The notes beneath the pieces were generated by a model, which was not told the origin of the DNA, ran no database searches, and worked only from the letters and a program-made list of their open reading frames with translations. A program made the translations under genes and the position numbers. Positions 38,900-43,895 of a stretch of 64,000 nt of DNA are shown here, in pieces (the stretch's first letter is position 1; each line of letters starts with the position of its first letter). The stretch lies in the sequence record OM728297.1. One strand, 5' to 3'.

Positions 38900-39871
38900 A
38901 TGGTAGATACTATTTTACTAGAAAAAATTTATCATAGAACAGAATTGGATCAATTAGATGAATGCTTTGAAGAAATACTTAATCTACTACCATCGAAGAA
39001 TTTTAAAGATGCTGGTTTTAAAAGGAATATATCAAAAATAGAAAAACTCTTGAAGAGTACTTTTAATATAGATTGTAAAATTTTTCTTCATCCAACATTA
39101 AGTAATAAAGTAAGTTATGGTATGAGAATTTTCCCTTCTTATGAAGAAATGAAAGGACAATATTTAGAAGCCATTGAATCTAAGAAAAAAGGTTATCAGT
39201 TAATCGATTGTCATAATGTATCAATTGAAATTGAAGGATCTCTTTTAAACCTATTTAAAAGAGAAGGAGCAACATCTAGAATGCTAACTGCAATTTTAAT
39301 TCATGAAATTGGACATAAAGTATATGTTAAAGTTCAAAATGCTCTTAGGGATGAAGAAAATTCTAAGAATATGGCTAATATTGGTTATGGCATGGGATTA
39401 GCTATGGCAGTACTCTCTATGACCGTTAGAATGGGTAAGAGAACTTTATCAGTTCCATTAACTGTAATGAGCCCAATTATAGGTTTTGTAGGTTTGGTTA
39501 TGATTGTAATGGGTACAAGTTCTCTTATGGATTTTGTTGCAAATAAATATTATTCAGAGAGAGAAATATATAGCGATAGCTTAGCAGTTAAATATGGATA
39601 TGCCGATGAGATGTATCAGACACTCTCAATGCTTCAAAATCATACTAACTCAACTCATAAAATTAGTACGAATGTATTTATTAATTGGATAAGGAAAAAT
39701 TTAAACTTCTATTATTTAAGAAGAAAAGGAGTTATTGATGTTCTCAAGAAAGAATATCAGACTGCTGAAACAGAATTAGAGAAAGAGTTGATTAAGAAAG
39801 TACTAATTGATTTAAATAATAAGCAGAATAAAGATTTTGGTGAGGATAATACTCTTTTATTAAAAAAATAA
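38900..39871 (+). CDS. Zincin-type metallopeptidase-like protein with hydrophobic hairpin
   Basis: LIHEIGH, downstream E..SD..A..YGY; start likely ATG 38900 after AGAGG. Confidence 0.65.
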   Translation: MVDTILLEKIYHRTELDQLDECFEEILNLLPSKNFKDAGFKRNISKIEKLLKSTFNIDCKIFLHPTLSNKVSYGMRIFPSYEEMKGQYLEAIESKKKGYQLIDCHNVSIEIEGSLLNLFKREGATSRMLTAILIHEIGHKVYVKVQNALRDEENSKNMANIGYGMGLAMAVLSMTVRMGKRTLSVPLTVMSPIIGFVGLVMIVMGTSSLMDFVANKYYSEREIYSDSLAVKYGYADEMYQTLSMLQNHTNSTHKISTNVFINWIRKNLNFYYLRRKGVIDVLKKEYQTAETELEKELIKKVLIDLNNKQNKDFGEDNTLLLKK

Positions 39872-39900
39872 AGAAGGGCAAAGTATCTGTCCTTCTTTAT
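39868..39900. terminator. Bidirectional hairpin terminator
   Basis: 13-bp IR. Confidence 0.65.
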
Positions 39901-39905
39901 TGTAA

Positions 39906-40094
39906 CTATTCAGTTATTAATTGTCCAAGATTATCAACTATATTATTAGCAAATGGTCCAATATTATACAATTCATCTTCCATATCATTTAGTTCTCCGA
40001 TAAATTCGCTATTGCTATCATCATCTAGTTCTACAAAATCAAAACTAATTTCATCAATACCATCAAGTAGTTCTTTGACCTCCGCTTTGCTCAT
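39906..40094 (-). CDS. Small acidic hypothetical protein
   Basis: SD AAGGAGG. Confidence 0.65.
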   Translation of the reverse strand: MSKAEVKELLDGIDEISFDFVELDDDSNSEFIGELNDMEDELYNIGPFANNIVDNLGQLITE

Positions 40095-40170
40095 TTCAAA
40101 TTCCTCCTTGAGTGAGAGTTGGTATTTCTAGATGTTTTTATTTTAACCAGAAAACTTCATCTTGAAACTC

Positions 40171-40215
40171 AAAAAAGAAAAAAAAATTCACCTGAACTAG
40201 TTTATGCAGGTGAAT
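40171..40215 (-). terminator. Hairpin terminator (minus strand)
   Basis: attcacctg/caggtgaat IR with A-tract on plus strand. Confidence 0.65.
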
Positions 40216-40227
40216 CTCTAAGATGTC

Positions 40228-40938
40228 TTATGTTAGTTTAGTTAGTAGGATTCTAAATCCATTTACACTAACAGGGGAATATTGAATACTAAGTATTTCT
40301 CTATCTGGAAATTTCTTTCTTATATAACTCTCAGTTTCTTCATTTTCAGGAACAGCAAAATATTCCAATATAGAACTATCATCATCTGAAAATGTTATAA
40401 AAGCACCGTATAATTTATAATCAAATCCTTCTATTCCCTGTGTTCTTTTATATTCAGTGATAATCCTATCAGATATTCCCATAGTTTCTAAAGCAGTTAA
40501 TATCATTTTCTCAGAAAGACTACCAAGTTTATCAATGCTTGTTAAACTCTTTTTGCTCATAAAATCAAGTAATTTATTTAAATTATCTAAACCATGTTTC
40601 CTTAATAAGTTAAATGTTCTTAAGTCTAATAAATCTTTATCAATCTGATAATTCATTTTATTTCTTTTACCTTCTAGTAGTTCTTCTTCTTTACATTTTT
40701 CAAATGCAGTCCATACTAATTGATTTACTCGTGATGATGATAAATTCATTATTTGACCTACTTCTTCATTAGATAAAATTTTATCCCCACCAAATTTTAT
40801 AATTACTGTTTGTAACTCATTAGGAGATATTACATTTTTGTTTCTGTTAAAGAATTTAATTACATCCTCTAATTCATAATTGATTCCAAAATATTCTATT
40901 ATTTCCTTGTCAATATTTCTTCTCTCTTTTCGTACCAA
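40228..40938 (-). CDS. Sigma-70 region-4-like HTH fused to RNAP alpha-CTD-like domain
   Basis: ISPNE..V...FG....LSNEEVG..MNLSSSRVNQL and L.LRTFNLLRKHG......L......L......LG..S. Confidence 0.65.
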   Translation of the reverse strand: MVRKERRNIDKEIIEYFGINYELEDVIKFFNRNKNVISPNELQTVIIKFGGDKILSNEEVGQIMNLSSSRVNQLVWTAFEKCKEEELLEGKRNKMNYQIDKDLLDLRTFNLLRKHGLDNLNKLLDFMSKKSLTSIDKLGSLSEKMILTALETMGISDRIITEYKRTQGIEGFDYKLYGAFITFSDDDSSILEYFAVPENEETESYIRKKFPDREILSIQYSPVSVNGFRILLTKLT

Positions 40939-40969
40939 TGACTTTCTCTCCTTTCACTCTTTCTCATAT

Positions 40970-40978
40970 ATAATATAT
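40970..40978 (-). promoter_or_regulatory. Early-type promoter motif ATATATTAT
   Basis: ~30 nt upstream of TTG 40938. Confidence 0.65.
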
Positions 40979-41006
40979 ACTTAGTTTTATATTTTAATAC
41001 GGTACA

Positions 41007-41018
41007 AACATTCTATTA
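41007..41018 (+). promoter_or_regulatory. Late-type promoter AACA-N6-TA
   Basis: AACAttctatTA upstream of terminase. Confidence 0.7.
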
Positions 41019-41044
41019 AAATATCATAATAGGAGGTTGATTAA

Positions 41045-43015
41045 ATGTATGATTATTCTACTAGAAACCTAAGTTTTATTAAGATCTGGAAGTTTCTAAA
41101 AGATCAAGGTATAAAAAATAATAAATTCTTTTTAAAATTAAATGATGAAACATTACAAGGTGTTGATCCATATGATCCAAATTTAACTGATGAACAAAAG
41201 GTAAGAATACAGGTTGAAGTAATGACTAACTTTTGGTATTTCTTGAGGGAAGTAGTGCGAATTCCTGAATCGGGTGGTTCTATTCATTTCATGCTACACA
41301 GAGCTAATCTTGGTCAAATGTTTCTTATGGAAAATAATATTGATATGATTGAAATACTGCCTCGTCAGAATGGAAAAACAATTGGGGCTGTATGTCGATA
41401 TATATGGGTATACCATTGGGCTACCAAAAATACTCATATGATTTTTAGTAATAAACAGTACGCCGATTCCCAATTAAATATTAAACGTTTCAATGATATA
41501 ACAGAATTATTACCAAGTTATTTAAAAACGCATTTAGATCCTAAAAAAGATACAAATAACTTAGCTCAAATTTCATGTGCAAAGAATAATAATAAAATTG
41601 ATGCAATGAGTACTGCTAGGACTGTTACTGACGCTGACAAATTAGGAAGGGGTTGTACTGTTCCCATCATCTGGTATGATGAATTTGCGTTTTTAAAATA
41701 TAATGATACGGTATACGCTAGTGCAGCACCAGCACTATCAAAGGCGTCAGAAGCCGCACAGCGTAATGGTACTCCTTATGGGAAATTAATTACAACTACA
41801 CCAAATGATCTTGATACAGAAATGGGTAAATATTGTAAGGGTATGATTGATGATGCATGTCCATTTGATGAAGCTTGGTATGATTGGGATATTGATGAAA
41901 TTAAAAAATATATTGAACAGAACTCTCGAAATGACTTTGTTTATTTAGTATTTAATTATAAAGAGTTAGGACATGATGACAAATGGTATCAAAAACAATG
42001 CCGTCAGCTCAATAATGACTTATTAAAAATTAAACGTGAAATATTATTGGAATGGACATTGGCTAACGATACTTCGCCTTTTTCAGAGGAACAATTAGCA
42101 GAAATTGGACAACATGCAGGTGAACCTATTGGTAAGTTTTATGTAATGAAAAGATATAAATTTGAAATTTTCAGTGAAATGCGAAATATATTTAAAAAAT
42201 CATGGCTGATCGGTATAGATATTGGAGCAGGTTTGAATCGAGATTTTACAGTGATATCTATTATTGATCCTAAAGATATGGTTCAAAAAGCAGTATTTAG
42301 AAGTAATAATATATCTTTACCTGATTTAAAAGATTTGGTTATACACCTAGTATTAGAATTTTGTCCTAATGGTGTCATTATTCCAGAACGAAATAACTTA
42401 GGTATCTCTTTAATACAAGATCTACTACGTTCAGAAGTAGCTAATAACTTATATTATGAAGTTAGAGAAGTAAAGGGAGAAAAGAAAGTTGATGACCCAA
42501 AAAGATCATCTAAAAAGACAGTTAAGACTAAAACAAGAGTTTATGGGGTTACTACTAGTAAAGATAGTCGGGATATAATGATCAATGAGATTCTTAGTAA
42601 TGCAGTTAATGATACTCCACATGTGTTTACAAGTAAATATATTTTTGAAGAATTAAGAACATTAGAAAGAAATAAGAAAGGAAAGATTGAACATAGGGAT
42701 GGAGGTCATGATGATACATTATTCTCATGGCTAGTGGCATGCTATGCTTTCTTATATGGAAATAATATAAATAAATTTGTTAAAGTCATCAGTGATGGCG
42801 ATAATAATGAGAATGAAGAAAATAATAAAGATAGAGCTAGAAATATTCATGCATTGTCTAAAATTAATAGTGGTGAAAAATCACAGAGTGAAATATTATT
42901 AGAAATGTATAAGAATGAAAGTAGATTCTTTGAAGATCATAATGAGAATGATAATAATATTAGAAAGCAAAAAAGAATGAAAAGCCTAAATTTTATTACT
43001 AGTTTAAATAGATAA
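41045..43015 (+). CDS. terL: Terminase large subunit
   Basis: PRQNGKT Walker A, IWYDEFAF Walker B, IGIDIG and HDD nuclease motifs. Confidence 0.9.
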   Translation: MYDYSTRNLSFIKIWKFLKDQGIKNNKFFLKLNDETLQGVDPYDPNLTDEQKVRIQVEVMTNFWYFLREVVRIPESGGSIHFMLHRANLGQMFLMENNIDMIEILPRQNGKTIGAVCRYIWVYHWATKNTHMIFSNKQYADSQLNIKRFNDITELLPSYLKTHLDPKKDTNNLAQISCAKNNNKIDAMSTARTVTDADKLGRGCTVPIIWYDEFAFLKYNDTVYASAAPALSKASEAAQRNGTPYGKLITTTPNDLDTEMGKYCKGMIDDACPFDEAWYDWDIDEIKKYIEQNSRNDFVYLVFNYKELGHDDKWYQKQCRQLNNDLLKIKREILLEWTLANDTSPFSEEQLAEIGQHAGEPIGKFYVMKRYKFEIFSEMRNIFKKSWLIGIDIGAGLNRDFTVISIIDPKDMVQKAVFRSNNISLPDLKDLVIHLVLEFCPNGVIIPERNNLGISLIQDLLRSEVANNLYYEVREVKGEKKVDDPKRSSKKTVKTKTRVYGVTTSKDSRDIMINEILSNAVNDTPHVFTSKYIFEELRTLERNKKGKIEHRDGGHDDTLFSWLVACYAFLYGNNINKFVKVISDGDNNENEENNKDRARNIHALSKINSGEKSQSEILLEMYKNESRFFEDHNENDNNIRKQKRMKSLNFITSLNR

Positions 43016-43081: not shown

Positions 43082-43124
43082 TGAATTTAATTAAAATTAG
43101 TTGACATATATAGGAGGAAGTCTA

Positions 43125-43895
43125 ATGGCTGAAATGATGGATGAGCAAGAAGCAAAATTTTTAACAGATGAGGATATTGATCATGTAATTACATCTTTAT
43201 CAGATGATATTATTTTTGATAGTTTGAAAGAACAGATTAGCAATGTATTTGTACAATCTGATAGTAATCCAGTATACTATATTACTTATTTTACTGGTAA
43301 ATATAATTATATTATGAATAAATATTCAGAGTATGAAGAAGTATGTGAAAAAATAAAAGAAATTAGAGAAGAATTTTATGAAAAACTTAAAACACTAATT
43401 GAAGAAAAATTTGATTTTACATTAAATTTACCTGCATTCTTTGATGATGAAGAGAAGTTTAATATTATTGGGAACCTTTATGATTTCTTCATAATTAGAA
43501 ATAAAGTAAATTCAGTTAATGTTATCTCTGGATATATTGACAAAGAAATTAAGGATCTCATTAAATACTATAAACCTTTAATTGATAAAAAAGATCTTAC
43601 CTATAATAACATCAAAAAGACTATTAATAAAGATATTGCAGTAATTATTTGTAAACTACCTGACATTATTTCAAATCTGACAGTGGAGTCTGGGTTTGAT
43701 CTAGTACAGCTAATGATAGATGATGAACAAGAAATTACGAATATGGTTATTGGTACTTTATTTGATGAGAATACTGAATATATTAATATTGGAGAAAGCT
43801 TTATTGATAATATTCTTAATGCTATTAAGAAAAATGAAGTATATTACTTGCAGGCTAGAACTCAATTAGTAAATAAATATTCAGATAAAAAATAA
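43125..43895 (+). CDS. Hypothetical acidic helical protein
   Basis: Start likely ATG 43125 after GGAGG. Confidence 0.7.
   Translation: MAEMMDEQEAKFLTDEDIDHVITSLSDDIIFDSLKEQISNVFVQSDSNPVYYITYFTGKYNYIMNKYSEYEEVCEKIKEIREEFYEKLKTLIEEKFDFTLNLPAFFDDEEKFNIIGNLYDFFIIRNKVNSVNVISGYIDKEIKDLIKYYKPLIDKKDLTYNNIKKTINKDIAVIICKLPDIISNLTVESGFDLVQLMIDDEQEITNMVIGTLFDENTEYINIGESFIDNILNAIKKNEVYYLQARTQLVNKYSDKK

Follow-up and report, generated by a model that had tools for sequence, protein, structure and literature searches.

Sigma region 4-like and alpha-CTD-like domains joined in one early protein of the uracil-DNA phage vB_BsuM-Goe21

The jumbo phages AR9 and PBS1 serve as models for phages with uracil-containing DNA, and each encodes two unusual multisubunit RNA polymerases. 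According to papers and reviews published up to June 2026, these phages encode nothing homologous to the alpha, sigma or omega subunits of bacteria. Which role, then, is played by a gene of this group that specifies a clear homologue of one alpha domain and of one sigma domain, and that is among the first transcripts of the infection? This question was addressed for Bacillus phage vB_BsuM-Goe21, from which a stretch of 64,000 nucleotides (record OM728297.1; referred to as the window) was analysed. The gene is an open reading frame (ORF) of 236 codons plus stop codon with a TTG start, which is located on the minus strand at positions 40228-40938. A first-pass annotation, made from the sequence of the window without database searches, had described it as a combination of sigma region 4 (sigma-4) and the C-terminal domain of the alpha subunit (alpha-CTD), and had delimited it to 40228-40978. 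The lower coordinate agrees with the ORF, whereas the upper one lies inside the promoter (40970-40982), because the ORF ends at 40938. Its remark that the polymerases of these phages have no alpha subunit is in accordance with the literature on the AR9 polymerases and with a review.

The domain assignments were evaluated with searches of increasing sensitivity. The Goe21 sequence alone remained below the thresholds: Pfam Sigma70_r4 was found at residues 55-84 (E 2.2e-4, 21.1 bits versus a cut-off of 24.1), and the NCBIfam rpoA model aligned with its positions 220-293 to residues 82-155 (E 2e-4, below the curated threshold). A profile built from four family members was then searched against all PDB sequences, and the only matches were sigma region 4 and alpha-CTD. 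The sigma-4 part of this profile (residues 34-84) matched SigA of Staphylococcus aureus and Bacillus subtilis best (E 4e-6 to 2e-5), and the alpha-CTD part (residues 95-157) reached an E value of 3.8e-5. A profile of the alpha-CTD part alone reached 3.5e-6, and its top 13 matches were all alpha-CTDs. Profile-profile comparison using hhalign with strong-scoring relatives resulted in probabilities of 98.4% for sigma-4, for which segments above the Pfam threshold were used, and of 98.2% for alpha-CTD. Thus, both modules that had been proposed were recovered by profile and profile-profile searches. The residue pattern that had been quoted corresponds to the family consensus, but the actual residues of the Goe21 protein agree with it only partly.

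Structure prediction gave the same result. The AlphaFold2 model has a mean pLDDT of 74.8, with 80-92 in the sigma-4-like domain (residues 30-90, 40669-40851) and the alpha-CTD-like domain (residues 91-158, 40465-40668), and it was compared with 48,161 PDB chains in a scan that was independent of Foldseek. The second-best match of the model was the B. subtilis alpha-CTD from the complex with Spx (1z3e_B; Z 8.0, with 66 of 67 residues aligned at an rmsd of 2.3 A), a result that depends in part on the sequence result, because the alignment used for modelling included alpha-CTD relatives. Further matches were the alpha-CTDs of Escherichia coli, Helicobacter pylori, chloroplast, Mycobacterium smegmatis and Thermus thermophilus, as well as dozens of sigma-4 domains, on which the model could be superimposed with Z 6-7.4 and an rmsd of 1.4-2.6 A over about 60 residues. 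The domains of the model are not packed against each other (pTM 0.39). Therefore, a Foldseek search with the whole model against PDB, AFDB and BFVD was uninformative, and BFVD returned the AR9 orthologue only ("Uncharacterized protein"). Together, these analyses confirm the observation that sigma region 4 and alpha-CTD are present in the protein, and that both domains are genuine.

The protein itself is not a sigma factor, nor can it be called an alpha subunit. Pfam and NCBIfam gave no match to Sigma70_r2 or Sigma70_r3, and the 29 residues preceding the sigma-4-like domain (40852-40938), which are about 99% identical to AR9 and form two N-terminal helices that extend this domain in the model, are too short for a sigma region 2. 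As regions 1-3 are absent, it is impossible that the protein binds the core or opens promoters in the manner of a sigma factor. Pfam also gave no match to the alpha N-terminal domain (alpha-NTD), and the rpoA models aligned only at positions 220-293, far under their full-length cut-offs. The remaining residues 159-236 (40231-40464) constitute a third domain, which is specific for the clade and was overlooked in the two-module description of the first-pass annotation, as was the recurrence of both modules in numerous uncharacterised proteins of phages and bacteria. This C-terminal domain has the order strand-strand-helix-strand, its pLDDT is about 90 when it is modelled alone, and it does not match any known fold: the search with the domain only yielded nothing at Z 5, and the best Foldseek E value was 0.14. 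With the whole model, a likeness to T7 Gp2 (Z 5.6) and to phi29 p56, a uracil-glycosylase inhibitor (Z 4.9), had been found and was attractive in a phage with uracil-DNA, but it was not upheld with the domain alone (Gp2 Z 3.3, nothing of at least 5). A weak whole-model likeness to a ribosomal protein also disappeared in the domain-only search.

The locus is common to a group of closely related phages. Over positions 39800-41100 of the window, identity is 100% to Goe21 itself, 92.7% to AR9, 92.6% to PBS1 and 90.6% to Internexus. The orthologues are AR9 g120, which is labelled "hypothetical protein" in GenBank, "RNA polymerase" in RefSeq and uncharacterised in UniProt, and PBS1 gene 6, which is annotated as "RNA polymerase subunit A". 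PHROG 28674 ("RNA polymerase") covers the Goe21 protein from end to end. The labels in RefSeq, PBS1 and PHROG indicate that annotators had already noticed the alpha-like piece. No paper was found that discusses AR9 gp120 or fusions of sigma-4 and alpha-CTD.

Outside this group, close family members are scarce: word-indexed protein searches and IMG/VR yielded PBS1-type phages only, and an exhaustive HMMER scan of 1.84 billion representatives, which resulted in eight matches, was needed to detect a more distant relative. This protein (P0004) has 232 amino acids, aligns over its full length with 27-28% identity (E 1e-12), and is the only other protein with the C-terminal domain. It passes the Pfam threshold for Sigma70_r4 (42.8 bits) and scores 21.7 bits for RNA_pol_A_CTD (cut-off 23.8). 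Its gene is located on the 260-kb metagenomic contig SRR12632060_494 (locus L004), which is derived from a distant PBS1-like jumbo phage, because it also carries genes for a uracil-glycosylase inhibitor, a prohead protease and a Gp23-like capsid protein. Searches of the window and of L004 with hidden Markov models of each of the three domains revealed no paralogue.

Five larger proteins (P0005-P0009) contain Sigma70_r4 together with one or two copies of RNA_pol_A_CTD, and phmmer matched the Goe21 protein to them over both regions. Their Pfam scores for alpha-CTD are 63-113 bits in all cases. For sigma-4, four of them score 45-64 bits, and the fifth, P0006, remains under the cut-off with 22.3 bits. 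About a dozen additional sigma-4/alpha-CTD proteins were retrieved by profile search, none with a meaningful name, and the ESM Atlas contains several clusters of 94-198 members, nearly all with both Pfam families, of which most are viral and one is from Bacillota. P0009, P0011 (on a 324-kb contig) and P0015 are encoded within phage arrays of very small early-type genes. The genes for P0007 (L008, 8001-9296) and P0008 (L006, 6592-7929) are chromosomal, the former being located between ftsY and ylxM-ffh, and each specifies one sigma-4 and two alpha-CTD domains. Altogether, three family proteins have one sigma-4 and two alpha-CTDs, which equals the upstream-promoter readers of one holoenzyme. In the Goe21 protein, both domains are present in one chain, sigma-4 comes first, and homology to members of the fusion family is detectable. 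Judged by these sequence relationships, it is a divergent member of an uncharacterised sigma-4/alpha-CTD fusion family to which a C-terminal domain has been added. No published function of such fusion proteins was found in the literature. A separate observation concerns P0006 (L009, 6307-8439), which has 710 amino acids with two alpha-CTD domains and a sigma-4-like stretch, and is flanked by genes for a DNA methylase, an HATPase protein, an HNH protein, an SNF2 helicase and an EcoRII-N protein, a neighbourhood that looks like a defence island.

Next, the residues that contact DNA in the bacterial counterparts were inspected. Positions were mapped via HMMER alignments, with B. subtilis SigA for sigma-4, and via the family alignment. 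In E. coli numbering, the -35 element is contacted by R584, E585, R586, R588 and Q589 of sigma region 4.2, and the "265 determinant" of alpha comprises R265, N268, C269, G296, K298 and S299. The equivalents of the former in the recognition helix (residues ~66-83) are Ser68, Ser69, Arg70, Asn72 and Gln73, so that two of five are kept (R586 and Q589) and three are replaced; the equivalent of F563 is also kept. Arg70 and Gln73 are invariant across all family members. At the five positions P0004 has Tyr, Thr, Arg, Arg and Gln, and the bacterial relative P0008 has retained the complete set. The alpha-CTD-like domain has retained R107, N110, G139 and S142 at the positions of R265, N268, G296 and S299, whereas Leu occupies those of both K298 (L141) and C269. 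The retention of the Arg and Asn equivalents of R265 and N268, noted from the letters before, was therefore verified in the alignments, and both residues are found in the orthologues, in P0004 and in nearly all related alpha-CTD repeats. The net charge is +4 for the alpha-CTD-like domain (+6 in Internexus) and -2 for the sigma-4-like domain. From this residue pattern, binding of the alpha-CTD-like domain to the DNA minor groove is plausible.

These results bear on two roles that had been put forward, occupation of host -35 elements and titration of Spx-like binders of alpha-CTD. The former loses ground, because R584, E585 and R588 are replaced by Ser, Ser and Asn and the domain is acidic. A lineage-specific site would fit the pattern of the recognition helix better than the universal host -35 element, because this pattern is Ser-Ser-Asn in Goe21 versus Tyr-Thr-Arg in P0004, and the canonical set in P0008. 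The mutation Y263C (cxs-1) in B. subtilis alpha abolishes control by Spx. The position of Tyr263 is occupied by Phe in the Goe21 protein and by Cys, the cxs-1 residue, in P0004, and for this reason titration of Spx as a conserved role also loses ground.

A wider version of host take-over has to be considered, namely that it serves as a decoy of the upstream-promoter readers of the host polymerase, or competes with them, and thereby depresses sigma-A-dependent transcription. It might occupy UP-like DNA or the beta-flap, or soak up partners of sigma-4 and alpha-CTD. This would be in line with the origin of its domains from exactly two host modules, the best sequence matches being region 4 of Firmicute SigA and alpha-CTD, and with its very early expression. 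In addition, AR9 infection is accompanied by a fall in total host mRNA, the phage can do without the host polymerase, and the protein is a part of neither phage polymerase. Firmicute phages are known to attack that interface: phage G1 ORF67 reportedly binds region 4 of sigma-A, and the complex of the two is PDB entry 4g6d, which is among the matches found here. However, the replaced -35 contacts and the acidic sigma-4-like domain are unfavourable for such a competitor, and the variation of the recognition helix and of the Tyr263 position between the two phage clades would not be expected for an invariant host surface. Furthermore, when measured against the host pool, a change is seen for only 34 out of 4,175 host genes, and an effect specific for a promoter class is not evident in these data, which do not include rRNA promoters. 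We therefore regard an attack on host transcription as possible, but doubtful.

The time of expression could be deduced from the promoter and from published AR9 data. The sequence AAGTATATATTAT-6N-G at 40963-40982 on the minus strand, with the predicted start G at 40963, shows a single mismatch to the early consensus of AR9, AAATATATATTAT-6N-G, which is recognised by the injected virion polymerase (PMC5312081). The window contains eight early-promoter sites versus 0.7 expected by chance, and the AR9 record annotates an early promoter at g120. The transcript of AR9 g120 was present at 5 min in primer extension (PMC5312081), and in the AR9 RNA-seq data g120 belongs to a small group of genes that peak at 5 min. 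Accordingly, the early-type promoter of the first-pass annotation is well founded. A ribosome-binding site, AAAGGAG, is located 9 nt upstream of the TTG codon (40948-40954). Directly after the stop codon, a terminator-like hairpin (40182-40219) is followed by a U-run (together 40171-40219), so that the gene is probably a transcription unit of its own. This element, with a centroid energy of -15.3 kcal/mol (z -2.5), shows 100% conservation in AR9; a consensus terminator scanner missed it, which we attribute to the 3-8 nt loop limit of that program. The gene for P0004 is preceded by a perfect early-promoter match that ends 23 nt before its ATG, and a convergent gene follows it; therefore, both the gene and its early expression are conserved across the clade. 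The same 13-nt motif is present in four perfect copies in 20.7 kb of L004 (9959-9978, and at 1353, 6173 and 19130). We also observed that this motif is exactly the same in both groups, yet the proteins encoded by L004 are only about 27% identical to those of PBS1-type phages. With regard to the AR9 "pre-early" class, the AR9 record shows no individual promoters for g109 and g111, and for this reason the class may reflect RNA stability instead.

Early expression raises the possibility that the protein is an accessory of the phage polymerases, with the sigma-4-like domain bound to the flap of the virion or the non-virion enzyme and the alpha-CTD-like domain adding contacts to upstream DNA, which these enzymes lack. 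The AR9 polymerases have no alpha subunit, gp226, the specificity subunit of the non-virion enzyme, has only the N-terminal helix of sigma-4, the reviews still hold that these phages have neither a sigma nor an alpha homologue, and no partner is known for the flap of these polymerases (Iyer et al.). However, the non-virion polymerase of AR9, purified or recombinant, consists of four core pieces and gp226 and is promoter-specific without the g120 protein, and the recombinant enzyme is also fully active in its absence. The C-terminal domain of gp226 already touches DNA about 35 bp upstream, and late promoters are not conserved in that region. For the virion polymerase, early transcription is independent of new protein synthesis, and the AR9 record, which flags many virion proteins, does not have g120 among them. 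As both phage polymerases function without the protein, an accessory function of this kind seems quite improbable to us.

The divergence of the gene within the phage group was examined as well. Goe21 and AR9 could be aligned over 43 kb of the window, and the median identity of 141 segments of 300 nt was 99.0%. The least identical of all segments (84.0%) lies inside the gene, and a neighbouring segment has 89.7%. The transitions are abrupt: codons 1-29, g119, the large terminase gene terL and the two intergenic regions are 99-100% identical to AR9, whereas codons 30-236 (40231-40851) are 83-88% identical. The 106-bp intergenic region between the gene and terL is 100% identical in the two phages, and PBS1 differs in one base. 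For codons 30-236, 91 substitutions correspond to a dS of 0.485, a dN of 0.099 and a dN/dS of 0.20, and the dN/dS values of the individual domains are 0.17 (sigma-4-like), 0.12 (alpha-CTD-like) and 0.42 (C-terminal). In the recognition helix only one difference (S69A) exists despite a dS of 0.6. The high dS excludes a recent burst of change. An old and diverged allele entered the otherwise near-identical genome by recombination, and purifying selection acts on both alleles. The comparison shows that the gene is real and constrained, and that its alleles are diverse in the phage population.

Our preferred, if tentative, explanation, to which we give somewhat less than an even chance, is that the protein is an early, free-standing, DNA-binding transcription regulator. 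The protein is produced within minutes after infection, from a promoter that the injected virion polymerase reads. The sigma-4-type helix-turn-helix (HTH) would then read a specific site in the major groove, and its specificity would have drifted from the host -35 element and vary from one phage lineage to another. The helix-hairpin-helix of the alpha-CTD type, which contains Arg107 and Asn110, would hold the adjacent A/T-rich minor groove, which is alike for DNA with uracil or thymine. By analogy with HTH regulators that have a small alpha/beta C-terminal domain, the C-terminal domain may pair two copies or bind a partner. The promoter-bound protein would block or re-time transcription early in infection, and its most likely target would be the uracil-containing DNA of the phage itself.

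Several results are in favour of such a regulator. Sigma-4 and alpha-CTD are both DNA-reading domains, the residue pairs R70/Q73 and R107/N110 are kept in them, and the alpha-CTD-like domain is basic. The gene and its early promoter have been conserved at a protein identity of 27-28%, and the two DNA-reading domains show the lowest dN/dS values. The absence of the protein from the non-virion polymerase and of a virion flag in the AR9 record is in agreement with a free-standing factor, and two-domain relatives occur in arrays of small early-type genes. Other points weigh against it. The sigma-4-like domain is acidic throughout the PBS1 group and the equivalent of Lys298 is Leu; in P0004 the charges are reversed, such that a basic charge is not a constant property of either domain. 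No site for the predicted DNA binding was found. Moreover, sigma-4 and alpha-CTD are also modules for contacts to proteins, and the folds would suit a role in protein binding equally well. Finally, the data do not directly distinguish phage DNA from host DNA as the target.

The position of the gene next to terL, from which it is divergently transcribed, suggests another kind of DNA-binding function outside transcription, for instance as a small terminase or as a different factor for packaging, replication or the nucleoid. The combination of an N-terminal HTH with a strand-rich C-terminal domain loosely resembles small terminases. However, no terminase family was matched in Pfam or PHROGs, the g120 transcript has its maximum at 5 min, while that of terL is seen by 20 min, and in L004 the gene has a different position, upstream of the prohead protease and capsid genes. 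Such a function is very unlikely in our view, and what remains of the probability belongs to explanations of other kinds. The terminase gene itself (41045-43015, plus strand) is a single uninterrupted ORF of 656 codons in Goe21, whereas the AR9 record joins five pieces; three AR9 insertions in terL (about 636, 320 and 309 bp) are absent from Goe21. A match to the AR9 late-promoter consensus, AACA-6N-TA, is present at 41007-41018 on the plus strand, 27 nt before the terminase start codon; within the 106-bp intergenic region, it forms a back-to-back pair with the gene's early promoter.

As a bolder idea, the protein might be a portable module for reading upstream promoter DNA, in which the sigma-4-like domain docks onto the flap of a polymerase and thereby supplies an alpha-CTD in trans. 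We consider this unlikely, albeit worth stating for its consequences. On the phage enzymes, such a module would complete polymerases that have no alpha and an incomplete sigma-4 at a subset of promoters, and on the host core or holoenzyme it would poison initiation that depends on -35 and UP elements. It would be the first sigma- or alpha-derived factor in a phage group that has been described as having none, and would provide the first function for the widespread sigma-4/alpha-CTD fusion family. The gene is a candidate for three open questions of AR9 infection: the fall of host transcription, the shut-off of the earliest transcripts, and help with upstream DNA for polymerases without alpha. 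It also draws attention to the unstudied proteins with sigma-4 and one or two alpha-CTDs in phages and in Clostridia-type chromosomes.

Some observations were made in the vicinity of the gene. The downstream gene (39906-40094, minus strand), the orthologue of AR9 g119, encodes 62 amino acids with a net charge of -16 and a pI of 4.05, and is 98.9% identical to AR9. It has no match in Pfam or NCBIfam; its product might mimic DNA or act as an inhibitor that binds proteins. AR9 g123 carries a note on a Pfam match to "transcriptional regulator Crl", and for its orthologue in the window (43101-43895, plus strand) this match is not obtained with current Pfam. Sequences near-identical to the AR9 locus (L005, 4700-6000) were found in metatranscriptomes from food fermentation (19-38% of the sampled words) and wastewater (12%), as well as in the AR9 infection RNA-seq runs of 2017. 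Therefore, AR9-like phages are transcriptionally active in food fermentation and wastewater.

How does the protein compare with known systems? With region 4 of primary sigma factors, i.e. SigA of B. subtilis and S. aureus (7ckq_F, 4g6d_A, 1ku7_A), it shares the HTH fold and sequence kinship over residues 34-84, but it lacks regions 1-3, other residues stand at the positions of R584, E585 and R588, and its sigma-4-like domain is acidic. The B. subtilis alpha-CTD has the same helix-hairpin-helix fold at 21% identity, and the Goe21 domain shares with it the residues equivalent to R265, N268, G296 and S299; in contrast to the bacterial domain, the Goe21 domain is tethered to a sigma-4-like domain instead of an alpha-NTD, and has Leu in place of both K298 and C269. 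UPF0122/YlxM (1s7o, 1xsv) gave the best structural match for a whole domain (residues 11-94, Z 8.3-8.6), but with an identity of 9-11% and no match to Pfam UPF0122 the likeness is restricted to the level of the fold. AR9 gp226 belongs to the same phage lineage and also has a sigma-derived structure. It is, however, a stable polymerase subunit with sigma-2-like and finger-like parts and the first sigma-4 helix only, whereas the Goe21 protein has a complete sigma-4 HTH and is not part of the enzyme. Further counterparts are the uncharacterised proteins of phages and Bacillota with Sigma70_r4 and RNA_pol_A_CTD (P0005, P0007-P0009, P0011, P0015 and others), in which the same domains occur in the same order (phmmer E 1e-5 to 3e-4). 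They differ from the Goe21 protein by their near-canonical contact residues, often have two copies of alpha-CTD, and none of them carries a C-terminal domain of the Goe21 type.

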